Below, piece by piece: positions 25,636 through 55,464 of a stretch of 64,000 bases of DNA (position 1 is its first letter; the number at the start of each line of letters is the position of its first letter). The stretch lies in assembly GCA_016748015.1 (NCBI GenBank), contig JAAOMT010000258.1, forward strand, positions 622,173-686,172, read 5' to 3'. Under the pieces are notes generated by a model, which searched no databases, was not told where the DNA came from, and saw nothing but the letters and a program-made list of their open reading frames with translations. Made by a program: the position numbers and the translations under genes. The DNA comes from Geosiphon pyriformis uo1. Taxonomy: Eukaryota > Fungi > Glomeromycota.

Positions 25636-28600
25636 GAATTTTAATAAAAATATGTCTAAAAAAGTGCAAATTTCAAGTTCTGCTCAGATCTGAGTTGGAT
25701 TAATTTTTTTAATGAGTATCTACTAATCAAAAATTCTATTTGAAAAAATTTGAGAAGTGCTAAAAAAGTCATTAATTATATTTTTGTAAGTAAGAGTCTG
25801 TAATAAGGTCAATTCTGTTTTTGAGTTTTTTGATACAAATTACAAAGCTGTTTTAGTTTCAATTGGTTTGGGTGTTCTCTTGAATGTTTAATTAAATAGC
25901 TTATACAAACAGATTAACAAAGATTGTTGGAAGTTCAGAATCAAAAATACAAATAATGCCAAATAAGCTAAGTTTAAAGAATATGCTTTAACCAAACTCT
26001 CAGTAGTAAAGACTGAGTTTTTTATGACTAGTGCATATGATAATGTAAATACTATATAAAAATTGTTAGAGAAAGTAATAGTAAAGTCAGCTAATGAAAC
26101 ATTTTTTAAATACTGGTTTAGTAAATATAAATGTTCTAGAAACAAACATTTTTTAAAGTTTTTTGGGTTGGAATTACTAATTGCCAAAATTGTTAAAAAG
26201 TTAAGCTTTGATAATGTGTTTGAATTTGATTGTCTTGCTAAAAATTGGTTAACTTTAGATAATAATGAGACTTTTAAGATTATGAATATGTTTTGAAATA
26301 GTGAAAATTCAATGATTGTTCTCAAGTATTTGTTAATGGTTCATAAAAAATACAGAAAATTCAAGCTCTATGAGTCAAAGTTAGTTGAAAAAGTGTCTAT
26401 TAAAAAGGCAATTGAGAAGTGTATAGAAAGTTTTTATTTTAATAAAGAGAATATGATTAAAAGTATTCTGGACTGGCCTTTTTGCAAAGTGATTTTAGAT
26501 TACTTGGTAGTCAAAAATAAGTTGATAATCAAGCCTAATGAGATAAAATTTAAAGTAGATGGGATTATGAAAGAGTGGACAAAGAAGTGGTCAATGCTTC
26601 CAAAGATGTTCAACCTTTGAATTTGTCATTATATGTTCTTAAACTATGTTAATGATAGTGTCTTTTTTGACATAAAAAAAAAGTTAATATGGAGAAGTTG
26701 TCTTTGGTTGTTAATAATCTGCCAAATAATAAAGCTGTCAATTTGTTAAAAATATCTAATGAGCTTTGAAAACATTGTGATAAAGAGGTGTTGGTTTGTT
26801 TTTTAAAGCTGTTAAATTTTTGTTTAATTTTAAATGTGAGTTTTGACTTCTTAAAAAAGAGCATGGGTTTCAATAATTCCAAAATTCTACAAATGGAATA
26901 GTATTTTGATGAATACTAGGCCTATTGCATTAATCAAAACAGTTTAGAAGATATTGTCTAAAATTCTTTCTGATAGAATTTTATTAGCATACAGCAAATT
27001 TGGTGTTTTTTGCAGTGATAATTTTTCAGTATTAAAAAGTACTTCAACTTAGTCTCCTATTTTTGCTATTAGGTTAGTTGTTAAAAATGCTCTGGAGAAA
27101 AACAGAAAGCTTCAATTGGTGTTGTAAAACATACACAAAGCTTATAATTTAGTGGGTTAACATTATTTAAAGGCTAATTTACATCACATTAAGATGTACA
27201 GTTGGTTTATCAGGTTTTTTGGCAATATTTATGAGAATTAAATCAATAAAATAATGACAGATTTTGGCCTCTCAAATGGTTATAGAGTACATAATGGCTT
27301 GAATCAGAGTAAAGTTTTTTCTCCACTTCTTTGGAGAATTTTCTATGATTTACTTTTGTGTAAAGTAAAGAGACATAAGCACTTGTATAGATACTATATT
27401 GATATTATATTGATATTAAGTTTGTGATAAAAACTGGCAGAATTAAGACTGTTAGAGAAAGAACTTTCTTTTTAGCAGCTGGTGTCTTTATTGATGACAC
27501 AATTTGAATTAGAAGTTATCAAGCTTCTACACAATACATTTTAAATAATGCCAGTAAGTTTTTTGATGTTAATGATATTTCAATTAATAATAATAAAACA
27601 GCAGCTATTTTTATCAATCAAGGTGTTAAGACTATATTACTAATAATCAACAATTCACCTATCTCAATTGTTAAAAAAAATAAATCACACATGTATTTAT
27701 GTATTTTTTTATCTATTAAGGATCTTTTTAAGCCTAGTTTAACTTAGGTTCATGTAGACATCAGGTTTTTTTTAAATATAGTGTTGAAGAAGACTATTAT
27801 AGATAAATAATTTTCTTATTTGGTTTCAGCTATTCTGCAGCCTATAGTTAGCTATCAAATGCAGTTTAGTTTTGTTTCAGCAAGTGAATATTGCAAATGG
27901 GATGTAATCATTAAAAAATGTCTTAAGATCAAGACTAGTCTGTTATATAACTTTTTCAATAAGGTTTTGCATTATCTTTCTCTATATGATTTGAAATCTT
28001 TTAAGCAAGTGCAGTTTAAAAGAAAGTTGGCTTTATTGATTTTTTTTTCTAATGCTTATAACATTTTTGGGCATTTTTTTGAGCATAAATTTTTGGATTT
28101 GCAGGTTTTGGGGTGATTCCTTTTGAATTTTTTACAGTTTTCTGTCAAGTTATATGTTAATTCAGTGAATAATTTTTTGGCTAGTGTAATGAAAATCTTT
28201 TTGGAAAATAAACTGTCTTTGGCAAACAACTTGTCTAATGCTTTTTGCAGATTGAAAAAATTTCTAATATCTGGCATCTTAGGGCAACTTTTGTATTATA
28301 ACTTTGTTTTTTTTTGAAGCAGTTTGGTGTTGTATTTGGTGACAGACTTCTGGACAAAAAAGAGAATATAATGAACAGGAAAACATTTCAGCAATGAAAA
28401 AGATTGGATTCAAAAGGCTCTGTGCCTTATTAATTTATATTAACATCTGAATTTATGAACAAAAATGGTTTTTTGGAGGTAAAATCTGCTGTTGTTCTTG
28501 AATTGTCTGTGTTAAATGTTTTAAAATCTAAAGAGTTCTGTAATGTTTATGATTGTTTACTAAAAATTTGGTCTGATTGTATTGAGATTTACACAGATGG

Positions 28601-30003
28601 GCTCTTGAAGAATGCTGGTTCTGCTAAAGTAACAAATAAGACAGCTGTTTATTTTCTGGCTGCAGATGTGGATGTTAAAATTAGAGTGCATAGGCTGTTA
28701 TTTTCTACTTTGGCTAAGCTATAAGCTATTGCTTTGGCTTTAGAGTGTGTTTTATTTTTAAGTGCTGTAGTTTTGTATCTGAACAGCCAATCTGCAATTA
28801 ATGCTTTTGTATCTGAAACTTTGTTTGTAATATTTGACTTCTGCAATTAATGTTGAATTTAAAAATTACATATAATCAATTTTATTAGAAATAAAAACAT
28901 TTTGATTAAGTAAGTAAAAGTTAAAAAACATTCAGAAATTATGGACAATGTTAAAGCTAATAAACTGGCTGGTAAAACAATTTTTTTTTCTTTGTATGTA
29001 AAGATTTAAGAGCAGTTTTTGGTTACTGAAAATACTGTTGTGTCTGATAATATTTGTTATTTTGTTCATAATCTGTACTGGTTGATTTGCTATGCTCATT
29101 AGAAAACTGGTTTTAGTTGTAATATTGTTCTGAATGTTATGATCAAAAAGATAGATTGGGCTATTATTACAATAATTTGATATTCTGACTCATACATGTT
29201 CTCTAAATTTACTAGTAAAAAATCAGCTAATCTGCACACATATATAATAAAAGCAGTACATAGATAGCTGCTAGTAATGATTAGGAAGAAATTATATAAC
29301 AGGAATTATCCTAAAATATTATGCTTATTATGTGGTAAGGTGGAGTTGTCTAATTATGTTTTTACTTGTTTTGGTAATGTTGATCTCTGTAAAAACATTT
29401 TGATTAAAGTTGCTAAAAAATAAGTGTTATTGACAGATTCTTTTTGCTTACCTGTTTCTGCTATTTTGTATTCATTTTCAATGTGTGTTTTGAATGTAAT
29501 TCTGTACACTACAATTTACAAAGACTTTATGTTAAAAAATTGATATGCTGAGGCTGTTATGATTTTTGAAGAGAAAAAAAAAGCTGTTCTGGCTCCAGTC
29601 AAATATATCTAGTTTGTAATAGAATTGCATGACTCTAAAGTATAATTGATTAGATTCAAACATAGGATGAATATAGAAAAAACTGGTTTGGTCAAGAATG
29701 ATGATTTAATTGTAGATTTGTCTTACTGTATGGTATTTATGTTGTTGAATAAAGTAGTTTGTATGTTTAGTGTTATAGAATCCTTTGCTATTAGTTTTGG
29801 TAAATGCAAAATATGTTATTTTTTCTCTAATTTAAGTGATGATGCTTTTATTAATATAGACATATAATAATGTCTTAACTGGCTTGAATAGCTGATTACA
29901 TGTAATAAATATGTGAACTGTATTTAATTTGCTCTACTTAGTTTGGTTTTATATACTAGATAGCAGTTGGATTTTATTTGTTAAATCTTGTAATAAAAAA
30001 AAA
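25636..30003 (+). mobile_element. LINE Y, 3' part (APE C-terminus, RT, RNase H, poly(A))
   Basis: Starts mid-APE at (G)NFNKN. GVFIDDTI RT core, IYTDG RNase H. Poly(A) to 30003, followed by TSD TTATATATTA (30004-30013). Confidence 0.9.
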
Positions 30004-30013
30004 TTATATATTA

Positions 30014-30586
30014 TTATGTATATATCATATTTTTTTATATTTATTTATTGCTCTGTACTATTTATATTATTATTTAATAATTGATTAATATATTATAATA
30101 TTATTATTTTTGTTTTTTATTAATTTTTATTAGATAATATTTTTTTTTTAATATTAAGATCTGTTGAAATCAATATATGTTTTTTTGATATTAATGTTTA
30201 ATACAGAAGTCTGTATACTTATTTGGATTATTTATTCTTATAAATTCTTGAATTTGTTGTTAGTAAGCTTTTTAATTCTATTAAAAATGAATATATTTAT
30301 TTTGTTTGTTAATAATACTTCTAAATAATATTAAAATAATATATAAAATTAATATACTGCTTTAAAATAGTTCTTAGCATTGCTTTTTTCAATCCATTTT
30401 TTGAATTTTTGGAGTTTTGTTGTTAAATTTTCTGTTATTTTTACTAATATAAATTGCTTAAAAATTTTATTATATAGTTATTATAAAATATATATAACAA
30501 AAAAAACAATTAAGTTTGTTTTTTCTTTAAATATTATATTTTTTAAAAGCTAGAATTTTTTTATAATTTTATCAATTAATATGTTA
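30014..30586 (-). mobile_element. Gypsy family 2, unit b: ORF3 end, PPT and LTR start
   Basis: Reverse complement aligns with ~20025-20612. Confidence 0.7.
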
Positions 30587-31056
30587 TAATGCAAACTATT
30601 TGTAGTCATCAAACAATTTATATAATTTTAATAATATTAAAAAACTAAATCATAAATATGATAGATTAAGTTCTTTTCTTTTATATTTACAGTTTAATTT
30701 TTTGAATTATATTATAATTTATAAAGTTATTAAAGTTTAAAATTAGCCACTTTTATTATTAATCTTTAATTTTCAGATGCTAATCAATCAAATTTTAGCT
30801 AATCAGCAATCATTAAAGTTATGTTATCATATAATAAATTATTAAAGTATTATTATTTTCAGAAAGACTTTCAATTAATATTAATCTAATTTTTAGATAG
30901 TTACTTTTTTATAAAAATATAATATCTTTTGATCTGTATATCTTCTGTTAGTAACATGGCACCATTAACTATGAATATTTTATTTATACTACTATCATAT
31001 TTGGTTGTCATTATTGAAACAAAAACCCAAATATCAATATTGTTCACATTAGGTAT

Positions 31057-32028
31057 TGTTATCGGAGGTTTTTGGTCTCTTTTTTTAAATGTTGTTGATG
31101 TCTGTTTGTTGTGAATTCACATTGTCTGGATGTGGTTGAATCTCTAGTAACTGAATGTATTTTCAAATTATCTCCTATAATTTAAACTGCTGGGCTTATA
31201 AGTGGAATAGCCAATTCTTTGCCAGTTACTTTATGTAGTTACGTTGTAGTAAATGTCAACTTTTTCTCAGGAATTGCTCATCTGGAAGCTCACTAAAAAA
31301 TGTGTAGTTACTTTGCTGTGAAAGTCAACTCTTCTACAAAAATCTCATCTGTAGGCTACCCTAATGATTGTATTAAAAAAAGAAAAGAAAAATAAAAAAA
31401 ATGTAAAAGAAATAGAATTTTTATCAAGGGAAACGTTTTTCTATCCAGGTCTGGAGTAACTAACAGTTTACTGAAATTGGTAACTAATCAATTTCAAAAC
31501 ATTAGTTGGGTTTTAAGGATTTTCCAAGTGCAATAATTAAAAAATTTGGTTTTTCGAATTATTTGATATTTATTTTTTTTTGTGTGTAGGAATGATTCAA
31601 AGTGATAAATCTAAAGTAAGATACATTTTCTCAAAGAGAGAAGCTCTTCTTTTATACAACTTGTCATAACACTATTCTATAAACTTGAACTTTGTTTTTT
31701 TTCTACAATTTTGCTGAACTAAAGCTACATTTTGGCAAACTACAAGTTATTTCTGCAAACTATTAGATATTTTGGTGAACTATCAATTATTTCGGCAAAT
31801 TTCTACAAATTTTGGCGAACTTTTTAAATGTTACATAGTTCGGGGTATTGCATAATTGATCATTGCAATTAGGTTACATTTGTGTTATGTACAAATTAGG
31901 TTATTAATTAAATGATAATTTCGGATATTTTACTAATGTAATAAGTAATAATTTGAATTACTAATTAATGATAAGAATTATAAGGGTAATTTTATGCTAA
32001 GCAATATCTCTAATTTTGTCTAGTAATA
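31057..32028 (-). repeat. 3' LTR of gypsy family 1, with PPT GAGAAGGAGG adjacent at ~32032-32042
   Basis: Colinear with 39894-40866. Purine tract immediately upstream on the minus strand. Confidence 0.92.
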
Positions 32029-32029
32029 T

Positions 32030-32716
32030 AACCTCCTTCTCAAGACTGAGCTCTATCGAAGTCCAAGTACTGTCTGTAATTTCCAGATAATAATCCAAAA
32101 TTATTGAAGAAATTTGGTCTGAAAATTGTTGAAATTTCAGTTCTGTGAGCTTTCCAATGTATTGAATTTTCAAAGGTTGTAAAATTGGGTTTTGTAAAAC
32201 GTTTTCACAGGTGTGGAATAGGTCATAAAGTCTAAGAGCAGCTCTTAATTTATAACAACTGTTTGTAAGTCCAGCTGTTGTTTTGAATTCATTGTAGAGT
32301 TATTTCCAAATAGCTTCTTTTGTGAGGTTTGCTCTTGTAAGCTCCCATTTTTGTTCGTGAAATGTTTTTCCAATGTAGAAATATCTATATATTGCAGTAT
32401 AGTTATAGTTTTCTTCATTAAAACACAGTTGAAGTTTTTGTTGAATAGTAGCATTTGGTGGAATACTAATAGGAATGAGCATTAAGTTTTCTTTTAAAAC
32501 AAGCTTTAAAAGTTCTGGCAAATAAATTCCAGAATAACTTCTTGTGTTTTTTTTATACAGATGATATTTTCGTGCATTTAAGGCTAAATTTGTAACTACT
32601 TCTGTTTAGGTATAATTAATGTGGTTTCCAGTAACAGTAATGGATAATTTGGGTATTGTTTTTAAAGCTAACATTAGTTTTTAGGATAATTGTTGAATGT
32701 TTTAAGGAATAGTCAT
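32030..32716 (-). pseudogene. ORF3 of unknown function between integrase and PPT
   Basis: Joined across stops/frameshifts: MT...LMLALKTIPKLSITVTGNH...ISIPPNATIQQKLQLCFNEENYNYTAIYRYFYIGK...YKLRAALRLYDLFHTCENVLQNP...WTSIELSLEK. Colinear copy at ~57365-58045. Confidence 0.6.
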
Positions 32717-35700
32717 TATAAGAGATTTGAAAATAAAAGAAAATTATTTTTGGTGTATGGGTTTTTATGTTATTTTTGTTTTGTTTTTGTGAGATTGTTT
32801 CTAAATTATAAAGAGATAACTATAATAATAAATTTAAATTAAGTGTTCAAGTTGGGAGGTTGTTCAATGACAACTATTGGTTCTAAATTTCGGGGAATAT
32901 CTTCGGGATTGATTAAAAGAGAATGTGTACCAATTTGTGGAATTATAGTGTTTCAAACAATCTCCATGTGCAACTTTTGCTAGGATTTTGTCATCAAGTC
33001 TTAACTTGTATGATCTATTGCCTAGGATTTCATGGATAAAGAATGGTTTATCCCATTTATTTTCAAATTTTCCACTCCATTGTTTTTCGGCTTTAGTTCT
33101 GTGTAAGAAAACTTTGTTTCCAATTTTAAATTCATTGGTGACTGGTGGCAATTTGTTGTCATGCTGTTCTTTTTGTTAAGCTTGGGAGTGTTTAATATGG
33201 ATTGCTGCTATTCGTTGTTTTTTTTCCAATGTGCTAAGCAGAGTGTAGGCTCTTCATTGTAGTGTTTTCTGAAAGTTGTTTTCATTAATTAACTGTACTG
33301 GGTATGTTTCTACTGTGAAACTAATTGGTAACGTTGTTGTCCTTCCATAAGTTAAATCAAATAGTGTGTGTTTTGTGGTATCTTGTTTTAGTGTTCTATA
33401 TGCTAGTAACACTGATGGAATAAAAATATCCCATTCCTGCTCAAAATTTGCTAAGACTTTGGCTAAAGATTCACATAATGTTCTGTTAAAACATTCTACA
33501 AGTCTATTTGTTTGTGGATGGTAGAGTGAAGATAATGGTCTTTTAATATTGAATTGTTCACAGATTTTTTGAATTAGATTGTTTACAAAATGTGTTCCTT
33601 AATCAGATAAAAGTTTGATTGGGCATCTATATCTACAAATAATGTCTTCATAAATGAAGTTTGCTACTGATTTTGCATCTGCTCATTGAATAACTCTGGC
33701 TTCAGGCCATTCGGTGAGATAATCTACAGCTACTGTAATATAATGGTTTCCTTGGTTTGTAATAGGTAGTGGTCTGACTAAATTGATACCTACTTGGTCA
33801 AAAGGCTGTCCAACTTTGATTGGATTTAAAGGTTCTGTAGGGCGAGTTCCTTTTTTTCTTTGACAAATATTGCAAGATTTAATGTATTCATGAATGTTTT
33901 TTTTTATTTGGGACCAAAAGTAGTGTTCTAATGTTCTTTGGGTGGTGCTATTTTTTCCTAAATGTGCTGATGAAGAGTCTAAGTGCATGTTGTATAAGAT
34001 AGTTTTCTTTTTATTTTCCTGTATTAATCTGAGTGGTTTGTCTGGGTTTTTGAAGTTTTGATAATAAATGGTGTTGTTGTGTAAAAAATATTGTTTGGCT
34101 TTTTGTTGTAATTGGTGTTTTTCATCTGAAGACCAATCTGTTGGGATTGTTAGTGTCTCCAAATATTGTTTAAGATTGTTGTAGTTTTCAGGATTCATTG
34201 TTTGTTGTTTTTTTTTTGTTACTGCTAATTCAAATGGGTGTTGGTTTTGTGTTCTAATTTTGCCTCATTCTTGAGAGACAATCACCATTGGTGTGGAGCT
34301 TTCCTGGTTTGTGATGTACATTGTATCAGTAGTTGGCTAAAAATCCTGTTCATCAGGTTTGTTTGGCATTTAGCTGAGTGTTTTTGTTCTGAAACCATTT
34401 GAGTCCAATATTATCAGTGATAATATCAAATTCTTTAGTCCTGAGATAAAAGTTGAAGTGGTGTAGGGCCCAAATTATGGCTGCTGTTTCTAGTTCTGTG
34501 GCAGGATAGTTTTTCTTAGCTGGTTTTAATGTTCTGCTAGCATAAGTAATTACTTGTTCATTTCCATTGTCGTCTACTTGTGATAAAATAGCATCAAAGG
34601 CAGTATAAGAAACATCTGTAGCTAGTCAAAATCAGTTACTGAAGTCTGAGTAGGTGAAAATTGGAGCTGTTGTCAGCTTTTCCTTGAGAATTTCAAAAGC
34701 TTTTTGGTGTTCTTCTATTCATTTGTATTTGACATTTTTAGTAGTGAGCTGGTTGAGAGGTTTTGTGATTTCTGAGAATTCTTTGATGAATTTTCAGTAA
34801 TAGGAAGCTAATCCAATAAATCCTCTCAATTCTGTGGTATTTCGTGGAGTTTTGAAGTTCTTAACAGTGCTGATTTTTCCAGGGTCTGGTTTAATTCTAT
34901 CTTTGCTCACAATGTGGCCAAGAAAGACCAAACTCATTTTTCCAAAGTATTATTTTTCAATGTTCAGTTTCAGTCTTGCTTTCTGTAATCATTGAAAAAC
35001 TTCTTGCAGGTGTGTTAAGTATAATTCAAAAAATGGTGAATAAACATCAGTATCATTGAAATAGACAACTACTGATTTCCAAAGGAGGCCTTTGTAAACA
35101 ACATCCATGAGTCTTTGGAATGTTGCTGGTGCATTGCATAATCCAAAAGACATTATATTAAACTCATAATTTCCTCCTTGAATGGTGAATACTGTTTTGG
35201 GGCAATTTTTGGAATCCATGGCAACTTGCTAGTATCCGCTCTCTAAATCTAATGTCGAAAAGTATTTGGACTTTCTAAGGGCATTCAACATGTCATCAAT
35301 TCAGAGAAGAGGGTAGACATCTCTAATGGTGACACTGTTGAGTTGTCAATAATTAACACAAAATCATATCTTTCCATTTTTCTTTTTAATTAGGACCACA
35401 GGTGAAGTCCATGAACTCATTGATGATTGAATAAGCCCATTGTTAAGCATCTATTGTACTTCTTTTCTGATAAATTGGTGACTTTCTGGAGCAATTTGGT
35501 AGGCTTGTTGTCACCTTGGTTTGGCATCTCCTGTATAGATTTGGTGTTGAACCAAATTAGTTCTTCCTAAGTCATTGTTGTTTTTGGCAAAGATATTAGC
35601 AAATTCTGCAATTAGCTCTTTAAGCTGGTTCTGTTGTTGTGATTCAAGTTGTCCCATGTTAATTTGAGATAGTTTTTCCATGACAACATGGTAGTTTTTA

Positions 35701-36099
35701 GAGCTGGGGTTTGGATTGATTTTTGGTAGTGAATGTCCAATAATTTCCGAGAAATTAAGAACTGTTTGGGGTTGTTCTTGTTGAAAGATGTTATTGTGAA
35801 TGACTTCAATTCTAAGTTGTTTAATAAAACTATGGGATAATTGTTGGAATTGTAAAAAGTAACTCGGACTTTCTTTGTTTCTTCTGGAATATAAATGTTT
35901 GGAATTGAGATATTATGTTCCAAGCAGACTTGTTTGTTGGATTCAAAAATTTGTTGTGTGGTTGTTGGCTTTGGGCAGGTGTAGATTTCCGGATGTTTCC
36001 CAAAGGGTAAAATAGTAATTGGTTGTGGAAGTTATAGAATCTAGTGAGATTCATTTTGTTCATTAAGAGCTATGTTTACTGAAACTGTGAATTGTTCAG

Positions 36100-36470
36100 T
36101 TGAACCAAAACCATTGGTTTCTCTTTCACTTTTCCCAATTGTTTTTTTTGATTGACTAATTGTAAACCTGAAATGTTGATTAAGAGTAAATAAATAGCTT
36201 GAGCAATTTTTTTGGCATGTTCAATCTGAAAAGATTTATTGGTTTCATTTTGTAATATGATTGTAATGTCTTCTGTATATTTAGCATCTATGATTCCTCT
36301 TCTAATATTGATTTCTTTGCTTGCCAATGATAATTGTGAAGTGATTTGGATCATTGCTCTTGGTGGAATTTCGAGAACAATTTTGAGATTGATCTTGGTA
36401 AGGGAATTTGGTTGAAGAACCAAAGTGTCTTTTTTTGGATATCATAGATCATATTCAGCATCAATTTTAT
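36100..36470 (-). pseudogene. dUTPase domain within gypsy pol
   Basis: Decayed versions of all five trimeric dUTPase motifs in order: DAEYDL, SQLSLA (RSSLA), GIIDAKYTE (GxIDxxYxG), KIAQ, RETNGFGS. Confidence 0.85.
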
Positions 36471-39400
36471 GTGCTTTTTCAGACTTTATTCCTTGTCCAT
36501 TGTTGTTGAAGTATTTGAGCTGTAAAGCAGACTGATTTTTGATAAGATAGATGGGTGTCGTTTCAATTTTTTCCATTGCTTTAGGTTCACCAAATTCGAT
36601 TTCATATTTGTCACTTTCACTGGGTAATGGAATGCTAAGGGCATAGCATTCAGAACACCATTGTTCATCACAAGGCATTATGCATTCCTCACATAATTTA
36701 ATGTTCATTTGTTCTAGCTGTTGAGCTTGAGCTTTTTTGGTTGGGTAGGTGTGACTTGTGATTTGATGATACACTTCTACTTCATCTTCATAATCAAATC
36801 CAGCTAATTTCAAGGTATATTTAATATATTCAGCTTCTTTCATTTGAAGGATGTCTTCTTTGGTTCCTCTGTTAATTAAAACCATGGCAAGTTTGTAAAT
36901 TATTTTGGTGTCATGGGGGTAATGATAAAGTTTGTTAAGGGCGCTATTGTATGCGGCATTGAAAAATGTTCCATGTTTTACCTTTTCTGCAATAGAAAAA
37001 GCATATTGGCAAGTTTGATTGCAGACTCCTTCTCTAAATGTGACATCAATCCAGTCATATTCATCAAGAAGCTGCTTTCTACAAGTAAGACAGAGTGTTT
37101 TATCCCATTTCCTGCTTCTTTTGATCAAGTGGCCCCATCGTTCTTGATGGCAGGCCTTGCAGTAGTAGCAAGTATGACTTTTATATTCTTCCTCAAATGA
37201 AATACAAGCTCCTATTGACAATAGTTTCTTGTGGCAGTCCTTATATTTAAAAGGAATATAGAGCATTGTTTCCTTGGTTCAGGCTTTGAGTAAGAGATAT
37301 TCCATCCAGGAGTTTTAGGTTCAGAGTGTGGAGTAAAATGTTTTTATTCAGTTTCTTTGGCCCAATTGGATGTTGATCCAAGAGCCATGAATGTTTTAAT
37401 TATTGGTTTTTCTTTTTCTGGTTTGAATTCAAAAGCCGGGGCTTTTTCGGAGCATTTGTTGAATGTACCACAAGTGGCAGATACTTGAATGTATTGTCCT
37501 TAGTAAGAGATTTGTAGTTCTTGGGTTTTCCAGTCTAATTTTGCATTGGCTTTTTGAAGCCAGTTATTTTTGACAAGAGCTTGATACTGAGGAGTGTTCA
37601 TTACAAGAACTTTGACTGGAATGGTGATTTCATCAAGAGTGAATGGAAAATTGTCAATTTCTCCCACTGGAGTCTTTTTCATGCCATCAGCAGTAACAAT
37701 TACTGTTTGGGCTGGTCAGTCAACATTTCTTTTTAACTGTTGTATTAACTGGTAAGTAATAATACTTTCAGCAGATCCACTGTCTAGGATTAAACAAATT
37801 GTTTTTTCTTCAACTTCAGCTTCAGTATACATAGCTGTGATTGCTTTTTGTTTGTTTGCAGCAGCATTGCTGAGTAAAAATGGTGATTCATTGGCTTCGA
37901 ACTCGAAAGAAAAAATATCAGAAAGATTGGCATTTTCAGCAATTCTGGCTGGTGGAATAGTAGTGTGGTTATGAGAAGAATTTTGTTGTTGTGCTGCAGC
38001 TCTACTTTCCGAGAGTGCAGTATGGTAAAAATCCTATTCTTTTGGTATTGTTAAATAACTGAGTTGAGTGTGATAGTGGTTGGGTCTTAGTTGAGTGGAA
38101 TTTTGGAGAACCAATTGGTTATTCGAACTGATTCTATTGTTGTTTACTTGGTATCGGTTTTGTGGTGTGAATTGATTTTGTGTAATCAATCTTCGAGCAG
38201 GTACTTGATAATGTTGTGTGGGTAATTGTCAGTATTGCTATTAGATTGGCTGTAGGGCGGATTGATAATAGCTATTTTGGTATTGAGGTCTTGGTAGATA
38301 GTAAGCTGGTGGTGGTAGTTGATAATAAGATTGCTGTGGTGGAGGGTAATATTGATTACTCCTATTTTGTTGGTTTCATTGTAGCTTTTTGCAATCTCTT
38401 TTCCAGTGGCCAGGGATTCTACAGTAATGGCAATTTTGGATTTGGTTGTTGGATGGTGGTCCGAAGTTGTTTTGATTGCGTCGTTGTAGAGGTTGGTACC
38501 TTTGTGGTTGTTGTGATTGCTGCAACTGCTGCAGCTGCTGTTGTTGCTGTTGGTTGGTGAAGTAGTTTTCAACTTTTTTGGTTAATTGGTCAATCTTTTT
38601 TTCAGCTGTTGAGCTGGTTTCTCCAATAGCCAGATTAACAAGTTTGGTATGATTGGCTTCTTCTATAGCCATTTCATAGTTTTTCACCTATTGAATAGCA
38701 GTGGCTAAATCTTCTGGTGCATGTGGGCAAACTTTTTTGATAAGTTTGTCTTTTAGTTCAGCAATGAATTGGTCCAAGATTTGTGCATTGAAGTAGTATT
38801 TATTGGTTTCCAATTGGCAAATCCTTCTAAGCAGTTTGTCAAATTTCCCAAAATAGGTCATAACTAATTTACTTGGCTCTTGCTTGATATTTCGGAACTG
38901 ATTTCGAAGGGTAATGGAAGTGTTATTGTCAGTGAACTGTTCTAGAAAAGCAGTTTTGAATGCTTCCCAGTGTTTTGGTGAGGCTTCCAAGTTTTCAAAC
39001 CATTCACCAGCCATTTCTTGTAAGAAATATGGAATTGCTTTTAACATTCTGGCAGTATTCTAACCATTTGCATCTCCTGTTTTTAAGACTTTGTCAAGCC
39101 ATTTTTGAGGACTGGTTTCACTGTCTTCTTCTGTGAACTCAGGGATTTTTGCAATGTATGTGGAAGCCATTTCTTCTTCATTTTCTGAGTCTTCTGTTTT
39201 TTGTTCTGATTTGGTCTCTTCACTTTGATTTTCTGCTAAGTAGTCAATAAGGTTTGTGCTGGTTAATATTGGTTTTTGTTGTTGAATAGTGCTTTTGGGT
39301 AACTGAAAATCTTCTATTTTTGAAAACCAAATAAGTAGTGAGCTTGGTGTTTGCAGTTGAGCAAATGAAGCTGGAAATGGTGTGATTGAGAGTGGTAATT

Positions 39401-39877: not shown

Positions 39878-39891
39878 GTGGGAGAGCACCA
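39878..39891 (-). promoter_or_regulatory. Primer-binding site TGGTGCTCTCCCAC
   Basis: TGG-starting tract 2 nt inside the 5' LTR end, complementary to a tRNA 3' end ...GGGAGAGCACCA. tRNA identity not assigned. Confidence 0.7.
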
Positions 39892-39893
39892 AA

Positions 39894-40866: not shown

Positions 40867-40870
40867 GCAT

Positions 40871-42335
40871 CAAAGAAATTGTAAAAGTACTATAAGTAAT
40901 TGTTAGAGAATTTGGGAATATTATTTGCACTCTATTTGTAAATTTGCATTATTATAATGTGAATAATTACTTTGAATTTACAAATAACTTTTCAATGACT
41001 ATAATATTGCATTTCAAAAAATTGCTTAAATCTAAAAGATATATAAAATTCCCTATAATAAAGATTTTTAATTAAATTTAATATTTGAATAATGAATTAT
41101 ACCAAAGAGAAATATAATAACCAAAATACCTATTGTGTATTTGACCAAATTATGATCTAATTTTAGAATTGGTTTTCTAGGCTGTAAAAAATTTTAATTG
41201 TTGAATATTTTAACAACTTATTAGAATATAATATATAATAGCTTATTATAATAATTAAAAAACTTACATCAGTTGGTGTTAATTTAAGAAAATCAGATTA
41301 GAATTGAAAAATCTTTGGCTTTACCTTAATTAAAAGAATTAAAGTTGTCTTAAAATCTATAATCTTAAATAGTTTTTTTTTGTTAGTGTTGTATATTTTT
41401 TAATGAGTTTGTTTTGATGCAAAAAATATATGAAACATATTAGTTTAAATAGATAAAACCCAGATTTTTTTGTAAAGATCTAATAGACTTCTCACTTATA
41501 AAAATTTGACATCTTTGAAAATATATGAATCATCATTAAAATACATAGCATTTTTGAAATCAATTGCAAGTTCTAATCAAATTCATAAATAAATAATATT
41601 TTTTTCAAATTTTTCATTGATGTAATGTAGAAAACATATGTCAAGTATTAAATAACTAATAAGAAAGAAATGCATAGTACTAACTTTAATTATGTTTAAG
41701 AATTTTGCTCTTTGATTACATTATAATATTCTGGATATTTTTTTTTAAACAGTAAATCCATAAATAATTCAGCATATTATTGGCCATTAAATATGAAAAT
41801 AAGAGGTTGCAATTAGGCTGTAATACTAAAATTGAAATCTATTTCAAATATCTTTATTTATTATTTTTTTAATTAACAATCATTTGCAATAAATTTTTCA
41901 TCAGCTTTGAGAGATTGGCTTTAATTTAAAAATCAGGTTTCTTTTAAGTTGGTTATTTAATTGTTAATGTTAAACTTTTTTGCCCAAATTCTTTGTCATA
42001 AGTTGAAAAAATTTTTGTAATAACTATTTTTATTGATATCATCTGAATTTTCGACTCAAATAATCTTTTTAATCCCAATAAAAATTTTTTTGATGAATAC
42101 TAAAGGAGCTTTTTTTGATTGTTTTTTATGCAAAACTACAAAACAGAAATTAAAGTTTAAATTGGAACCAAAGAAATTTAAAAAATAAATATATACCTGA
42201 GTTAAAAAAGTCATTTCTATTGTGATACAATTTTGTTGTATAATATTACATGGTTCAAATCTTTTAATTTTATCTAAGCACTAATTATACACTAGATTAA
42301 TATTACATTACATGAAAAAATGCTATTTTATTCTA
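40871..42335 (-). pseudogene. Spliced passenger gene inside the Tc1-like element (continues at ~31052-30700 beyond the gypsy insertion)
   Basis: Minus-strand splice signals: intron 42196-42136 (GTATAT...TTCTGTTTTGTAG), acceptor near 42335, further GTAAGT/TTTTAG sites. Frame reads through the gypsy TSD (...TFTISLM|PNVNNIDIWVFVS...). Product unknown. Confidence 0.45.
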
Positions 42336-42799: not shown

Positions 42800-44420
42800 T
42801 AAAAGAACATTTAGAAAAACAACATATTCAGTTAACTGTCTTTAAATATAATCAAAAAAGAGCTATTTTTCGATATTTTATCTTATTAAATGATAATAAT
42901 GAACATAAAAAAATTAATACCAGTTTGAAAATTGTCCAAAAAGTTTTTATTGATAGTAGTATATAGAAAGCACAAAAATTTGATATCTTACAAAGTATTA
43001 ATTGCTTAATGATAAGTTTCTAATATCAAAACATGAAAAATACCAAAAAACAATTAGAATAATTAATAATAAAAACATTGCTAAAAGATGTTATATTTAA
43101 ATTAAAAACCAAAACTTTAATGTTATTTTAGCCATATTTAAAAAATTCATTGAGCATAAATTGTTTTCTAATATTAGAATAATAATAAAAAAAACTATTA
43201 GTCTTATAACTTAGTGGCAAATTTTTATGTTCAGTCTATATGTCATATTTGCCATTATTTGAATAAAAAATACATTTATCATGAGCTACAAGAATTTTTT
43301 CTTTTTTTATTAAGTAAGTTAGAATATATTTGATTCATAAATTCATCTTTATACTTTGATATATACTTTTCAAGCTCATATATTTTTTCTAAAAATTTTT
43401 TTTGAGATTACAAAACATTATTTTTTTTATGTACATTATAATATAAGCCTTAATGATATTGTTGGAATATATAACTAAGAGTTTTGAGCCATCTTACAAT
43501 AGAAAAAAAGGAAATAGAAGATCAATCATGATTAGTAAATTTCTAACTAAAATTGATAAATATTTATGTTTACAACAAAATAATATAGAAAACTATTTTA
43601 ATATACTAAAAAAAACACGATGCTATTTGCAACTTAATATAAATTAAGATGATTATTAGACAACAAACCATCTTCTTAAACAAATTAAATATAAAGCAAT
43701 TTCAATTTTTGAGAAATTATATTTAGATTATACAGCCATATTTGTTTTTGATAATAACTCTAATCATGTAGCATTTAGTAAAGATGCTTTAATTACAAGC
43801 AGAATAAATTTAAGTTTAAGTAGAAAGCAATTATTAATGCAAAATACTTCTTTTGGATTAAATAATTAATTACAATTGATAATTTTTTTGAAAACATATT
43901 TAGATGAAAAACTTTAAAAATTGCTAAAAGAATTAAACAAGTATTAATAAAATAAAGAAAATGGCCATCAAAAAAATTAGTATTAAAATACCAAAAATGC
44001 AAAAAAAAATCAAAAATTCTTCAAGAGTTTTTTGTTGTGTATATTAAGTAATATCTTTGGAATTTGATTTTTTTATTCAAAAAAATGCAATTAAAGAATT
44101 AATCAAAAGTATAGGACATAAGTGCATTTTTTTCCAAAATTTTATTACAAATTAAATTTTATTAAAAAATATTAAAAGCTGCTAAAAAATATGCACATAA
44201 CAAATGCAATTATTTATGGAAAAAATTATAAAAAACAGTATCTTAAAATCTTGAATTAATATTTTTAATAACTATTAGATGATTTTCAAGAAAATATTAG
44301 TATTATATGAATTTTTATAGAAAGATCTTAATAAAAAATTAGTAGAATATGCTATAAAAAAGTATAAATCTCATAAAAAAATTCCAGATAATATTTTTGA
44401 AGAATAAGACAAATTAAATA
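42800..44420 (+). pseudogene. DDE transposase (IS630/Tc1/mariner superfamily) with internal inversion at 43212-43500
   Basis: Motifs VAHDKCIFYSNNG (in the inverted part), RKKGNRRSIMISKFL, AIFVFDNNSNH, and CIFFPKFYYKLNFIK (decayed PxxxxELNxIE). 5' limit approximate. Confidence 0.8.
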
Positions 44421-44623
44421 ATATTTAAACTTTGTAATACTCTATTTGGTTTTATATTATATAAAATTTAATAAAATTTTATTTTTTATTATAAATAATA
44501 TATTAAAAACACATATATATTAACCAATAAAATTTAATTATATAAATAAAAACACATGAAAATTATTATTTAAAATTTTGGACTAATCTACATTTTTAAT
44601 GATTATAAATAGTTTGCACCATA

Positions 44624-47600
44624 GCATTTTTTGTTTTTTATGATAAGAGTTAAAACAGTTTGTGTTTAACTCATTTTTTGGTGGCTGAATTTCTTTTTCT
44701 ATATAAAATTAATTAATATTAGCAATTGGGTTTTAATTTTTTTAGTAGTTTATAAGCTTATTTTTTAATAGTTTTTTGTAAATTGTTCTTGTTTATTAAT
44801 TCTATTAAGTAAGTATTTATTATTAATTCTGTAAATAATATAGCATTTTTTTTACATGCTAATTTAAATAGTGTAAATTTGTAGTATTTTGTTTTGGTGT
44901 TTAATAAGTCAATAAAACTAAAAAAATAAATAAATTTTATTTTTGTAAGTAATTTACATAATATTTTATTAAAACATTTTATTAATCTATTTATCTGTAA
45001 TAAATAAAATAACAAAAGAGGTTATTTTATTTCAAAATATTAGTTGATTTTTATAAAAAATTGTTTATAAAGTAAGTTTTTTAATTTAAAAATAACTTTT
45101 TTGGACAGTTATATTTACAAATCAAATTTTTGTACATAAAATTAACAACTAATTTAGTGTTTGTAGTTTTAATAGCTTTTGTTTTTGGTTATTTTGTTAA
45201 GTAGTTTATAATAACTGCAATATATTTATTCTTTTTGATAATAATAGTTAGTAGTTTTATTAAATTAATTCTTATTCTATTAAATAGTTTTTTTATTTTA
45301 ATAAATTTTAAGAATTTAGTTTCTTTTAATCTTCTTTTTTTTGACATATATTACAATTATAAATGTATTAAATAATATTGGTATATATTTTTAATTAATA
45401 GTACAGACTAATTGCCTATTAAATTGTAAATTTTTTTGCAAAATATTTTATATTTAAATTTGAGTATATATTATAAAGAATAATTTTTTTTGTTTTCAAT
45501 AATTTCTTTAAGTAAATTATATTAATGGTATTTATATAGTATTTATTTTTAATCAAGTAGTATTTAACTTGTATCTGAATTTTTGTTTGTTTTTACAATG
45601 ATAATTTTATTAGTAATTAAAAAATTATAAAATAATCTATTAAGTATTAATGTATTTTAATATTTATTTTAATCAAATTATAGATAGTTTTTAGTAATTA
45701 TGTATATTTTATTTAAGACAAACAGTTTACATTAGTGTTTTTGGTTCTCTTTTTATAAATAATATTATATATGTAAAGATATAATAAAATAATTTATTTG
45801 ACATAATATTTTTCTAATAAGTTTTTGTTTATTAATCAAATAAAACTTTTATGATCTGTAATAATATTAAAAAAGTCATATAGTAAATATTGTCAAAAAT
45901 ATTTTATGGTTTATACAATTATGAAATATTTAATTTTATAGATAAATTAGTTATTTTGATTATATTTAGATTTTTACTAACATATATGATTATGTGGTTT
46001 TTTTTTTATTATTTTGTGACAAAATAGCATCCAAATTTGTTCTAAAAACATTAATTACAAGTACAAATTTATTGGTAAAGTTAAGTTATACCAAAATTAA
46101 GACTTTAATAATCTTTTATTTTATGTAATTAAATATTTATTTTACTTTATTTTTGTCTTAAATTTTTAGCTAATAATTGATTTAAAAATTAGATTACTGT
46201 TGAAAAATTTTTTATAAATCTTTAGTAGTATAAAGTAAGTTTTAAAAATGCTTAAAATTCAGTTAAATTTTGAAAACAAAAATTTTTTTTGATTTTTTTG
46301 ATTTTTGTAATATTGAATTTTATTTCATTTTTTTTAATAATATAACTTAAGAAAATAAGTTATAATTTTCTAAAAAAGTATTTTTTGTAGTTAAGTTTTA
46401 TTTTGGCAGTTTAAAGTTTTTCAAAAATTTGTTATAAATATTGGAAATAGTTTTCAAATATTAAAAAAACACATTTGTATTTTTTAAATAAATTACAACT
46501 AATTTTCACAAGATTTCAAAGTAAACAATATCTATTAGCCATTAAAATATTGCAAGAGTATTAGTTAATCTGAATAACATTATATTAAATTTGTAATTGC
46601 TATTTTAAGTTATAAAAATAATCTTTTCTTAATTATTGAAATTTATGATTATTTGTTAATATTTATTAATAAAATTTAAAGTTAAAAACCATTTGAATTT
46701 ACTTAGAACATCCAAAATTTCATTAAAAATAAACATTCTTTTTGTAACATTATTAAGTTTTTTATAATTAACACAGAATTTGATTTTTTGGTTTTTTTTA
46801 TATTAGTATAATAAATAAGAACTATAGACTTATAGAAAATTGTATAAGTTTGTTTTTTAATATTTAATTAACTTCTTCTTTTATAAAATTATATTTGGAT
46901 AATAGTACTTAGTATATGTATTGCTTAATAAATAACATATTTTTTGTATGAATTTGATAATAAATTAAATTAGTTTAACCAAATCTTTTTTTGGCAAAAA
47001 TACTTAAGTATCTTAAGATAAGTGTTTTTAATTGTTTTTATTATAAAAAATTTAGTAATCTAAGATTAAGTTTAATTATTTTTTTATTAGTTATATAATA
47101 GTATTCAATATTTGGTTTTAATAAATTCAATTTATTTTTGCAATATAAGATAGTCAAAAATTTTCTAAGATTTATGTTGATTAATAATATTTATATTCAG
47201 ATATCTTAAGATCATATTCTTAAATAAATATATAATTTTCTTGAATAAATTGTAAATAAATATTTTTATTTGTAAGTAGCTATATAAGTTGAAAAAACTA
47301 ATTAAAAATTGTTTACAAAAAATAATATAAAGTTTGAATAAAAAATTCATTTCTATTATTTTTTTGTATATATTAAATAAGTATGTTTTAAATAGTAAAA
47401 TTGTAATTGTTCTATTAATTTAAATTAATTTTAAGTTTTTCTGTATTGTTTTAATATAATTGACAAATAGTGTAACTGTTTCTGTAAAACTAAGATCTTG
47501 GATTCTATATTCAGTTTTTTTAATTTTTTTTAAGCTTTAGTGATAATTAATCTAACAATTTAGAGCAAAAATAAAAAAATTTCTGTGCAATTTTTTTTAA

Positions 47601-49736
47601 TTCAATTACATATGATTAATTCAATTTATTATGTAATAAGATTATAAAATTTTTTGTATATTTAGAGCTTATAATTTTTTTTTAATATTAATTTTTTTTG
47701 AGCTAAGCTAAATTAAAAAACTATTTGTACTATAGTTTTGTGTGTTATTTTTAAGTTAATTATAATAACAGCAAAATATTCTAATGTTAATATTTAATTT
47801 TTAGAGTATTAAAAATCAAATTCAATATTTATTAGATGTATTTGTTTTAGTAGAATTCTTTAATTATCATTAATAAAACATTTAATATTCAGTTTTTGTC
47901 TAAAATCAATAAGAATATGTATATTATTTGTTAATATTTTTAGTGTTTAGAAAGTTTTATCTTGTGCTTTAGAGTTTGGATAATTTTCAAATTGAATTAT
48001 TTTTTTAAATAATTTAGACTAGAATTAACAATCAAAACACTATTGTAATTAATAAAAAATTAAGCAGTTTTTATACAGATAAGTATTAATCTGTACAAGA
48101 TATTGTTTTTGCTTTTCTTATGTTAAATAAAATTCTTAATAATAATCTTGAAATTTTTGTAAAAGATTTAAAAGGTTGTATTTAACAATTTTTTTGATTA
48201 TTTTTAATAGTACTTTCCAATTTCGAATTTTTTTGACTAATTTATTCTGTATACTTAATTTAATTATATTATATAATTGTTTGACATTATATAAATAATA
48301 ATATATGTAATTAAAAACTTTATTATAAGTAACATTAAAGAAAGTTTCTTTTTTTATTTAGTCAATAATAAAAATAGTATATTGATAAATGAGATTATAT
48401 GTAGTTTCTTTAAATTACATATTAACTTAGTTATATTTATTGAGTAAGAAATTTTTATAGACAATATAAGAAATTTTATTTTATTTTTTAATCATTTGAA
48501 ATATTTATATGTTTTTTTGTAATATTAATTATAATAATAGTATATAATCTATTAATTATTTTTGTATAAAATAATATAAACAGTCATAAAAAATAATTTT
48601 TTTTAACAGATTAAGTATTGTAGTCTTGATTAATATTTTGATAATATTGAAGATAAAAAAGAAAAAATAATATAGAATTAAAAATTTTGGTGTTTTATAA
48701 GAAAACAAATAGCAGTTTTTTATAATTATTCTTATTTTATATAATCTAATATGTTTTGATGACATTTGTTTCTAATGTTTTTTCAAATTTAAACCAAAAT
48801 AAATTGTTTATATTAAGAGTTTTTTAAAATATCTGTATATAATAAGTATTTTTGTATATTGTTTTTAATATGTTAGCTGTAACTTTTGAATCAACTAATT
48901 TAAAGTGGCATTTATTTTTTTAATCAATTATTTCTAATTAGTGCTTAGTATTAAATTGTATTTATAATTAATATTTTAATAGAAATGATTATTCTATTTA
49001 TGTTAAAAAAAAAGAAGTTAAGTTTTTTAATTACTAATTTTTTGGTTTTATTAATAGTAATAATAAGAATAATAATGTTTTTGTTAATTTGTTAATTTAA
49101 TTGGTTTATTAATTAAAAGATAATAGTACTTTTTGCTAATCTACTGTTTAAAATCAGTTTGATAAATTTATTATATACTTTTATTTTAGTATATATAACA
49201 ATAATTGATTTATTTTTATTTAAAACAGTTCTATTAAATAAAATAAGAGTAGATTCTTTTTTTTTAAAATCTAAAAAAATATGGCTGCTAAAGTTTTATT
49301 ATTAATAATAATAACCAAAAAAATTATATTAATATTTTTATTAATATTAATAGTAAGATTTTTGATTGTATTTTCATTTTAATTTTTATAAAAACACTTT
49401 ATTATAAACATCTAATTATTTAAATAAGTTAAAAAATATTTGTTAATAATATATATATGTATTGTATAATTTAGATTTTATAGTATTATTGTATTTGCTA
49501 CTAGTTAATCCAAAAAATTTGAGCTAATAATTGTCACTGTTATTGTAATAATCTAAGTATTATAATTAGACTGTGCTTTATTGTCATAATAGTTATTATT
49601 AAAAATATTATTAAATTAGTACTGAATATTAATTCTAAAATATTATGTATTAATTAACAAAAGATAAGTTTTATAAATTGTTTTTTATGAGTTTTAATAA
49701 GATTATAATAGTTAGTATTTGGCTTTAATATGTTTG
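44624..49736 (-). mobile_element. Gypsy family 2, unit b internal region (gag C-terminus, PR, dUTPase-like, RT, RH, IN), heavily decayed
   Basis: IN 44740-45300. RH LVINVFRTNLDAIL (from LxTDASxxGLGAIL) ~46040. RT NYKFNIMLFRL (from YEFNVMPFGL) ~46590. KIAQ and IISSKYTK dUTPase traces ~47590-47680. Confidence 0.65.
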
Positions 49737-49748
49737 TATTTTAAACAA

Positions 49749-52700
49749 AAAAAATAAAAAATCTTTCTCTTGTTGATCCTCCAGTCACAATAAAAGTGAG
49801 ATATTGTTAAAAAAAAAGTCTCTCTTACTCCTTATTTCTTTCGTGTTTTTAACTATTTCTTCAGACATATCTTTATTTGTAAACATAGAACCAACGGATC
49901 CTGCTGCTAGTGGCTCTGAATTTACTTTTACTGGGTTAGAGAACTGGCCTGATACAAAAAAAAAAGAGTAAATAGTGTGTACTCTTGCAGTACATCTTAC
50001 AAAAAGCCTAAGAATCCTAAAGTCAGTGTCAGTATGATTAATTTATCTACTAGACCATTGGGCCTGGCCAATATTGGTAATGTTGATGGTAAGTTTTTGA
50101 AATCTTGGAGCAGTGAAATAAAAAGCAAAGCAAGCAGTGTGGGTGGCCTGTTGGACTTAGAAAACATGAAAAATACTGTTACTAAAGAAACTAGTTATGC
50201 TGACTTAAACGCTTCTGTAGTCAATGGCATAGAGAATGATACCATATTCAAGAAAATGTATACTCACATGTACATATTAGGTCAATCTCTGAAAACTTTT
50301 TCATTCAATGTTTTAAGTAATAATGAAGATATGGTGGCTCTTCCATCTTCTAAGTTTAATGATTCTAATCAGCTGCCAAGTATCAAGTTATATATTTTGG
50401 AAAAAAAAACTTCGAGCCAGTAAAATCATTCACATTAAATATTGACAAATTGATTTCAATAAAAAAATTTTTTTATTATGTTGATGGTTTTGGGAAGGCC
50501 TCTGCTCTCTTAAAATTCTCAGAGATTATCAGATTATCATTTACTTTAGAATTGAGCTTGGATAAGACCAGAAAAATGACAATCTGTGAAAAAATTTTGG
50601 TAAACAATGATGTTAAAAAGCCAAGCAGTCATTTGAATTGGAAAATAATTGTCAAGAAAATTTTAGTTAATCTTTTCAAATCAGCTATTGTGGCAGTGTT
50701 TTTTAAATTTGGTAAAATTGTTTCAGTTAAGTTGCAGTTGGTAGGTCTTTGGCAAAAGGTCTTGATTTAGTTTAGATCTGTTGAAGTTGCCAAGTTGGTT
50801 GCTTTTAAGTAGTCTGTTTTGGTGGGAAAAAATTCTGTGTATGTGACTTTGGTCATTAGTGATAAAATGTCATGGATTTCAAGAAACATGTACTATGCTT
50901 TGTTGTATACTCTTCCAGTTAGTACAACTGTGCATGATTTGTCTAAGTTAATGGCATCTTATGATAAGAAAACATGTTTTATTGGCCACAATTCAAATAC
51001 TATATGTGTGTAATAGGTGTACTATTATTTGTTTTGAGAATAAAACATTCAAATTGGCTGTTATTGGTTTAGTTTCAATATTTAAGGATGTGAGTTTGCA
51101 TTGGGCTGGTCTTTTTCTAGCTTATTATACTTGATGCAAACAATTTGGTCATATTACTGTTAATTGTTTGGTGGGTGAGAATTTTGTTGGTCATAAGAAA
51201 TAGATAATATCTGCTCAGGATCAAATTTATCTGACTAGCATTTATAAAAAAACAGGCTCTTATCACTCATCCAGTCTTTTTTGATGATAAAACATGAGCC
51301 CAAGTTGCTGGTAGCTTTTCTTTTCATGTGATTTCTTTTGTTACTTCTGGTTGTAGTGTGCTTTCTGATGAGAAATCTTTTTCAATGGATTCTTCTCTTT
51401 CTGTTCTTGTTGGTTTAAGTAATTATTTGGTGTCTTTAGAATGTTTCTTAGAACTTTTAGCTGACCAGGTTTTTAATATTATGAAAAAGTTGAGTTTTAT
51501 TGAATTGGTGCTTTTGGTAACTCCCTTTCAAGTGTCTTCTATGGCTACTTCTGCAGCTGTTGATACAGGTCTGAACTTAGATATAAGATTGGATGACACG
51601 TTGTTGTCTTTCATTTTCCTTCTTCCAGTTGTGGATGATTTGGTTGCTGGTTTTAACTCAAATAGTTCAAAGGTATTAATCTTTAAGATGGGTGGTTTAG
51701 AATTAAAGATGGTGGCTTTGAAGGTATCAATTAGGTCTGTTTTGAATAAATTGAATTGTTTGTACTCCAGCCTAGGGTTTGCTGGCTCCTCTTTTCTTTT
51801 CTTCTCAATAAGTGATCTAGTATGGAAGTTTGTTACATGTAATATTCGAAGTATTAATATTTCTGCCAAACAGAAAAATGTTGTTTGATAACATAGAAAA
51901 TTTGGGAATGCGGTTTCAATTGTTACAAAAACAAAGTTAAAGTCTAGCATTAGGCTGTAGATTAAAAATAAGTTTGAAGGAGTGCGAGTTTTTACTTTTG
52001 GTTTGGATATGGGTTTTGCTAGTGCTGGTGTTATTATTATCATGAACAATTTCTTGGCTTATTATGTTGCTAAAATGAAGAAGATTTCTGGTCAGGTTAT
52101 TGTGGTATGTTTTTTGTTCAAAGGCAAGCTCTCAGTTGCAATTATTGGTTTGTATGTTGGTGCTTTTTTTGTTGTTTAGTTTGAGCAAGTGTCAATGATC
52201 AACTTTATTGTTGCAAAGGCTGTTAACTTTAGCACTTTTGTGGTTTTGGGTGGGGATTTCAATAAAAATGCACTAGGTAGAAGTGCAAGTTTTAAGTTTT
52301 GTCAGAGTCTGGTTTTGGTCAATTCTTTTAATAGATATTTGTTGGCCAAGGTCCCTACTTAGGATAATTCATGGAGTACTAAAAAGATTTTAGATTACAT
52401 TTTTGTCAGTAAGAACTTGTCATTAGCAGTTGTTGGTCATAGTGTTGGCTCTGTTTCTGCATTCTTTAACACTAATCACAAAGCTGTTATGGTGCCAATT
52501 GGATTGGATGGGCTCCTAGATATTTGTTTAAATAGCTTGTACAAGTGGGCTAATAAGGATCATTGGAAGTTTAAAATCAAAGATGTTAATAGTACTAAGT
52601 AGTTACATTTTAAGGAGTACTTTTCTGCCAAATTTTCAACTGTGGCCTTGGAGTTTTCAAGTGTTCAGGCTTGTATTGATATGAATGATATGTGAGTGCT

Positions 52701-52988
52701 ACTAGAGAAATTGATGGTTAAGTTGGCAGATGTAATATTTTCAAGACTTTAGTTTAGCAAATTTCAGTGTTCTAAAAACAAGCTTTCTTCTAAGTTTTTG
52801 GAATTGAAGCTATTGATTGCCAAATTAGTCAAGAAGTTGGGTGTGAGTGATATGTGGGAAGTTGATTGGCTTATCAATATATGGTCAAAGTTGGATGGTG
52901 ATAAAGCTGTTATAATCACAGATATGGTTTGGAATAGATTGAGATCTTTGGATATCCTTAGGCAGTTGTCATTATTTTACAAAGAATA
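49749..52988 (+). mobile_element. LINE X, 5' half (5' UTR, ORF1, APE, linker)
   Basis: Preceded by TSD TATTTTAAACAA (49737-49748). Conserved TTTCTCTTG 5' motif; ORF1 homologous to LINE A; WKFVTCNIRSIN and LGGDFN. Ends abruptly at LSLFYKEY. Confidence 0.9.
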
Positions 52989-55454: not shown

Positions 55455-55464
55455 TAATATATAA

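Follow-up and report, generated by a model that had tools for sequence, protein, structure and literature searches.

Two LINEs split by a probable 27-kb end-joining inversion within nested transposable elements of Geosiphon pyriformis

Introduction

Considered here is a segment of 27,353 bp from the fungus Geosiphon pyriformis uo1 which appears to have been cut out of, and then rejoined in opposite orientation into, a nest of transposable elements, in the course of which two long interspersed nuclear elements (LINEs) were each split in two. Positions are those of the ‘window’, that is, the whole stretch of 64,000 nucleotides (nt) analyzed, being positions 622,173-686,172 of contig JAAOMT010000258.1. 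The assembly is of 128 Mb and is AT-rich. The inverted segment, 25636-52988, consists of transposable-element sequence only and contains no host gene, and the window is, over that length, the reverse complement of the ancestral order.

Three kinds of sequence supply that ancestral order: the two broken LINEs, their target-site duplications, and the older gypsy element into which the LINEs are inserted. In all comparisons the reference has been natural, uninterrupted copies from the same genome (these bear L-numbers), rather than any consensus or repaired element, neither of which was constructed. In-script joining was limited to 30-nt junction strings along with the two parts of one 817-nt long terminal repeat (LTR), and served for counting.

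Two LINEs in four pieces

The LINE superfamily in question is an abundant one, with more than 4,600 candidate copies in the genome. Intact members encode ORF1 (ORF, open reading frame), an apurinic-type endonuclease (Exo_endo_phos), a reverse transcriptase (RVT_1), and RNase H. Young full-length copies are ~6.25-6.8 kb in length, and a genome-wide full-length search returned 21 of these, all colinear, a search which as such is uninformative with regard to inversion frequency.

Four LINE pieces bound the inverted segment, one on either side of each of its ends, and these are the halves of two elements, here LINE X and LINE Y. The 5' part of X lies at 49749-52988 (+; 3,240 nt) and consists of the 5' untranslated region (UTR), ORF1, the endonuclease, and the start of ORF2b, the reverse-transcriptase ORF, through residue 113. 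Its 3' part runs from 25635 to 22009 (-; 3,627 nt) and contains the reverse transcriptase and RNase H, followed by the 3' UTR and a short A-tail. LINE Y has its 5' part at 55454 to 52989 (-; 2,466 nt), in which the 5' UTR and ORF1 are followed by the endonuclease ORF as far as residue ~149, while its 3' part, at 25636-30003 (+; 4,368 nt), starts midway through the endonuclease domain and extends to the A-tail. Summed, the parts come to 6,867 nt for X and 6,834 nt for Y, i.e., both elements are full length.

Two junctions result. At J1 (25635/25636) the 3' part of X (-) meets the 3' part of Y (+), head to head, and at J2 (52988/52989) the 5' part of X (+) meets the 5' part of Y (-). Prior to the event the two LINEs were co-oriented, and each was cut once. 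The break in X is found at residue 113/114 of ORF2b (in the numbering of reference copy L016), ~175 residues upstream of the reverse-transcriptase domain, and that in Y interrupts the GG(D/N)FN motif of the endonuclease ORF, at residue ~149/150.

Pfam searches with the ORF pieces of X and of Y, taken singly, returned no domain, and the above domains were located instead via intact copies, i.e., by tblastn with intact LINE proteins and by blastn among the pieces. An alternative genetic code was considered as a cause of the broken ORFs and was ruled out, as all three stop codons are present and the frames also shift.

X and Y are paralogues (65-74% identical by blastn among the pieces). The inversion has in addition created two large imperfect palindromes. 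One is X3'/Y3', head to head, with 65% identity over 3.2 kb (21961-30046), and the second is X5'/Y5', tail to tail, with 69-74% identity (50447-54730). If transcribed, these could yield hairpin RNA directed against the LINE family.

The element into which the LINEs inserted

Both LINEs sit within ‘gypsy C’, an old and strongly AT-decayed LTR element within which the whole of the event took place. X is inserted in its gag region, while Y splits its 3' LTR. Left of the inversion are found, both on the + strand, its 5' LTR (20024-20844) and its gag (21470-22008), the latter ending at the X insertion site. Protease, reverse transcriptase, and integrase of gypsy C are found inside of the inversion, from 49295 to 44708 (within 44708-49736), on the - strand, that is, on the strand opposite to that of the element's own gag. 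The first part of the 3' LTR runs from 30586 to 30004 (-), is also inside of the inversion, and is 83% identical to 20024-20611, while its second part, at 55455-55698 (+), is outside and is 82% identical to 20602-20844. Only with the segment flipped is an LTR-gag-pol-LTR order on one strand restored.

The flip also rejoins a gag ‘knuckle’. The string YYYCLKY|KHIKAKY is present in the sequence and fits a CX2CX4HX4C knuckle in which the first and last Cys codons are now Tyr codons, replacements which, going by the codons, are consistent with G-to-A decay.

A gypsy C-family integrase fragment is found at 10943-11654, just upstream of a further LINE (LINE Z, below). The LTR at 20024-20844 may therefore be common to two tandem elements, in a three-LTR arrangement, rather than being the 5' LTR of gypsy C alone.

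Each LINE is accompanied by its own target-site duplication, and the two copies of each stand apart in the present order. That of X is of 12 nt, with the copy at the 5' end of X, TATTTTAAACAA, at 49737-49748 and that at its 3' end, at 21997-22008, being the reverse complement of TATTTTAAACAA. That of Y is of 10 nt, with the copy at its 3' end, TTATATATTA, at 30004-30013 and that at its 5' end, at 55455-55464, being the reverse complement of TTATATATTA. Relatives of the host element which lack the insertions allow these lengths to be verified. The left flank of X and the reverse-complemented right flank overlap by exactly 12 nt in all four of the intact host gypsy copies (L031-L034), and the Y flanks overlap by exactly 10 nt in the intact LTR 20024-20844 (tested at 20560-20660). 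The target sites, that is, are single copy in uninterrupted relatives for X and for Y alike. An initial annotation of the window had it that these duplications pair only following a flip of the segment, and that the flip restores gag-pol order and rejoins the knuckle; these claims hold against the intact copies, with the split LTR restored as well.

Precision of the joins

How exactly the halves fit was assessed by alignment to uninterrupted copies, using for each 5' piece its terminal 150 nt and for each 3' piece its initial 150 nt. The X pieces abut exactly on five of seven X-family copies, the two exceptions being the most diverged copies, and the Y pieces do so on all five Y-family copies. 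On L008, an uninterrupted X-family copy, the 5' piece aligns to its last base and the 3' piece starts at the very next base. The nucleotide alignments as printed contain no indel at either the X or the Y join, i.e., there has been no loss, gain, or duplication of ends. The ancestral Y join reads GGT GG|G AAT TTT AAT, a motif which Y, L003, and L004 have as GGNFN and the other copies as GGDFN. Genome-wide matches to the J1 query end at query position 236-239.

The halves assigned to one element are also about equally distant from one relative. The two halves of X are 78.8% and 78.3% identical to L008, and those of Y are 76.2% and 76.3-78.4% identical to L003. The 3' part of X is 78-81% identical to L006 and L008.

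Microhomology is 0 nt at both joins. The initial annotation had described 25636-52988 as a base-precise, reciprocal inversion between co-oriented LINEs which were broken at non-homologous sites with essentially no microhomology, and had specified restoration of X without gain or loss of a base and of Y at its endonuclease motif. All of this is borne out against natural copies, without recourse to the translations of that annotation, and with neither sizeable loss nor sizeable homology found at the junctions.

These properties of the joins bear upon a number of ways in which the inversion might have come about. The first is ectopic homologous recombination between X and Y, which are after all paralogues, and whose swapped target-site duplications resemble the signature left by Galileo-type inversions. 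The X join, however, maps to positions 717|718 of the 3' part of Y and the Y join to positions ~2505-2507 of the 5' part of X, with each element seamless in the coordinates of the other. The breakpoints, that is, are ~730 nt apart in LINE coordinates, and they are joined in opposite strand sense. Since X and Y were co-oriented, homologous exchange between them would have deleted rather than inverted what lay between. Geometry, i.e., co-oriented copies and non-homologous positions, refutes this explanation, leaving it next to no probability, as the initial annotation had also argued.

A second explanation is a conservative enzymatic exchange, either subunit exchange by topoisomerase II or the action of a tyrosine or serine recombinase on pseudo-sites. 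The product is indeed reciprocal and without loss, as is expected of conservative recombination. A recombinase nonetheless needs an inverted overlap shared between its sites. The ancestral sites have 0 nt in common at the join and lack a common core, with 10 of 30 positions overall matching in inverted and 8 of 30 in direct orientation. As for topoisomerase II, its 4-nt staggered cuts should, by our own strand-by-strand reasoning, result in 4 nt being lost at one join and 4 nt being duplicated in inverted form at the other, and no such footprint is seen. An enzymatic exchange is thus quite improbable. As to the enzymology which the initial annotation had proposed, the lack of loss, duplication, or shared core argues for plain blunt-end joining and against a topoisomerase- or recombinase-like activity.

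Replication-based template switching, whether as fork stalling and template switching or as microhomology-mediated break-induced replication, can yield small and nested inversions, and one such inversion of 289 bp is present within the segment (below). Template switching typically leaves microhomology and copy-number change at its joins, however, and neither is found here, making it a highly improbable origin. Staggered breaks with fill-in, lastly, would be expected to leave inverted duplications flanking the segment. No such duplications are present at either join, and this variant of breakage and joining is therefore not supported.

Inversion of DNA or of an assembled sequence

An apparent inversion may also be a product of assembly, scaffolding, or curation, that is, a 27-kb piece which was placed in the wrong orientation. 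In favor of this, the breakpoints lie in a very abundant LINE family, which is where assemblers tend to break. In addition, gaps flanked by duplicated sequence exist elsewhere in the assembly. Specifically, L015 (G000:C710:495500-504500), in LINE ORF2, contains a short run of N with the same ~75-residue coding stretch on both of its sides, which looks like a gap-closing duplication artefact and implies an assembly not free of local errors.

Reads nevertheless support J1. One public sequencing run holds 98% of sampled words from 24136-27135. The run is from the same sample and possibly was a source of the assembly; from it contigs were built using reads alone (k-mer assembly). One of these contigs, of 455 nt, covers 25346-25800 and crosses J1 with 0 differences and no gap at a depth of 85.2, as compared with depths of 81-97 for neighboring unique contigs, and it has no branch at 25635/6, i.e., it is of single-copy depth. 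This excludes an error of scaffolding or long-read orientation at J1, and depth together with the lack of a branch argues against a mixture with an ancestral allele. The window contains no N, and so neither join does. A misoriented piece which happened to abut base-exactly at both of its ends, at positions that are not repeated, would furthermore be improbable.

Allowing up to 2 mismatches, the assembly has no occurrence of the ancestral X-junction string. The ancestral Y-junction string is matched in the genome only by three Y-family copies other than Y itself, at 2 mismatches apiece, i.e., there is no second allele. Within public assemblies an exact ORF across J2 is not on record under two start choices, and public metagenome contigs gave no match to the J2 string or to the ancestral X-junction string. 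An artefact is very improbable, the read coverage being that of J1. The initial annotation had likewise set repeat-collapse misassembly aside, and with respect to J1 this stands.

Origin of the inversion

The reading which we prefer is that of a real and fixed inversion of 27,353 bp formed by direct end joining of two blunt breaks, i.e., one of the ‘cut-and-paste’ class, to which a probability of roughly 0.7 may be assigned. As a sequence of events, X would have inserted into the gag region of an already old gypsy C and Y into its 3' LTR, both LINEs being full length and co-oriented. One flush (blunt) break of the duplex would then have fallen in X, ~175 residues upstream of the reverse-transcriptase domain, and one in Y, inside of the GG(D/N)FN motif of the endonuclease. 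The segment so freed would have been religated in opposite orientation by direct end joining, with its ends neither trimmed nor filled. We infer that the ends were blunt, that joining was of a Ku/ligase IV type, and that both breaks belonged to a single event. Genes with Ku domains are present in the genome; a motif search for ligase IV found nothing, but the controls of that search were likewise silent.

Some considerations weigh against such an origin. Two perfectly clean joins are unusual for breaks that arise spontaneously. The read evidence covers J1 and comes from a run whose independence is from scaffolding and does not extend to the sample. The ancestral order, lastly, is one rebuilt from within a single strain.

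That both breakpoints fall within LINEs does not, on the other hand, call for explanation. X and Y together make up ~38% of the ancestral 36-kb region, which by our own arithmetic gives a chance of ~15% that both breakpoints would be in LINEs under uniform breakage, and this is not remarkable. As only transposable-element sequence was inverted, the event probably was neutral.

Nested within the large inversion, in a 1.5-kb repeat, is a small inversion of ~289 bp (43211-43497), which is reversed relative to its own flanks and to ~40 other genomic copies of that repeat, all of which have the opposite orientation. The joins of this small inversion look less clean, the left one lacking ~1 nt and the right one having 3-4 altered nt, a reading which is blurred by the 12-15% divergence between copies of the repeat. 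A Pfam search with the 1.5-kb repeat family returned no domain, and the repeat is not referred to here as encoding a transposase.

The small inversion may be an independent event, or else both inversions may be parts of a single multi-break (chromoplexy-like) event. In the latter case there would have been four breaks at once, with two large fragments swapped as well as flipped and the 289-bp piece left in its original chromosomal orientation. It is the case that 43211-43497 retains its original orientation relative to DNA outside of the large inversion, and two independent inversions within 27 kb would be a coincidence. The contrast between unclean small-inversion joins and clean large ones, however, suggests a different repair event. 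A single multi-break origin is, on balance, unlikely.

More generally, given a 289-bp inversion nested in the 27-kb one, it may be asked whether clean, non-homologous inversions are unusually frequent in this fungus, a proposition which we regard as unlikely. If it were true, then an agent which repeatedly makes flush double-strand breaks, or else multi-break events, could be indicated, with these tolerated because the lineage is rarely or never meiotic. Split transposable elements would in that case provide a genome-wide, base-resolved spectrum of inversion formation in such fungi.

Other features of the window

The inverted segment carries with it, as passengers, a younger LTR element, gypsy A (31055-40873; -), the LTRs of which are 94% identical, along with further repeats. 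A relative, gypsy B (56400-64000), lies to the right of the inversion. In the old copies, i.e., gypsy B and the interior of gypsy C (44700-49736), G+C is 14-17%, versus 33% in gypsy A. Relative to A, the C>T/G>A changes in gypsy B number 947, versus 204 in the opposite direction. All four dinucleotide contexts are about equally affected by these changes (49-59%), which therefore are not those of classical, CpA-type repeat-induced point mutation.

LINE Z, a third full-length LINE (~12085-19950; +), precedes gypsy C. Nested within it is a solo LTR of the gypsy A family (17953-18938), 88% identical to the LTRs of A. The only host-gene-like features near to the transposable-element nest are ORFs with a BTB/POZ domain and ankyrin repeats, at 3589-4098 and 7347-7898.

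Comparison with known inversions

For natural inversions, breakpoints resolved to the base are rare, since the ancestral sequence usually is missing. Here that sequence is supplied by the broken LINEs, by their target-site duplications, and by the host LTR element, and the locus provides a clear example of accurate end joining yielding structural change. It provides as well a template for a genome-wide search, that is, for transposable-element halves with swapped target-site duplications, and such a search could measure both the rate of inversion and the spectrum of junctions in fungi of the arbuscular-mycorrhiza type.

Certain known phenomena resemble this inversion in part. LINE ‘twin priming’ also gives rise to LINE pieces in opposite orientation. 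It takes place during a single insertion, however, with an inverted 5' part, one pair of target-site duplications, and parts which are adjacent, whereas here there are two complete insertions, each with its own target-site duplication, and 20 kb of host DNA between. In Drosophila the transposon Galileo has generated inversions by ectopic recombination between its copies, with target-site duplications exchanged (PMC2775673). Shared with Galileo are breakpoints inside of transposable elements and target-site duplications which pair only once the segment is flipped. Inversion of the Galileo type nevertheless needs inverted copies that recombine at homologous positions, leaving elements which are chimeric but colinear, as distinct from the direct copies, non-homologous sites, and head-to-head and tail-to-tail halves seen here.

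The literature on Drosophila inversions sets cut-and-paste apart from staggered breaks and from ectopic recombination (PMC7584159). Staggered-break inversions, which have been modeled in an isochromatid and a chromatid form (Ranz et al. 2007, cited in PMC7584159), have in common with the present case breakage and end joining at non-homologous sites, but the flanking inverted duplications of that class are absent here. In inversions of the ‘cut-and-paste’ class the double-strand breaks are instead clean, and the ends are rejoined by non-homologous end joining (Drosophila; Wesley and Eanes 1994, again cited in PMC7584159). The likeness in this instance is a close one, with a 27-kb segment reverse-complemented, no duplication or deletion at its ends, and no homology or microhomology at its joins. 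The differences are that the ancestral state has been rebuilt internally, i.e., from split LINEs, target-site duplications, and a split LTR element, rather than from another strain; that both joins are resolved to a single base; that the host is a fungus; and that the event is found wholly within nested transposable elements. The inversion is, that is, a well-preserved case of the already described cut-and-paste class, with a mechanism which is ordinary in kind.

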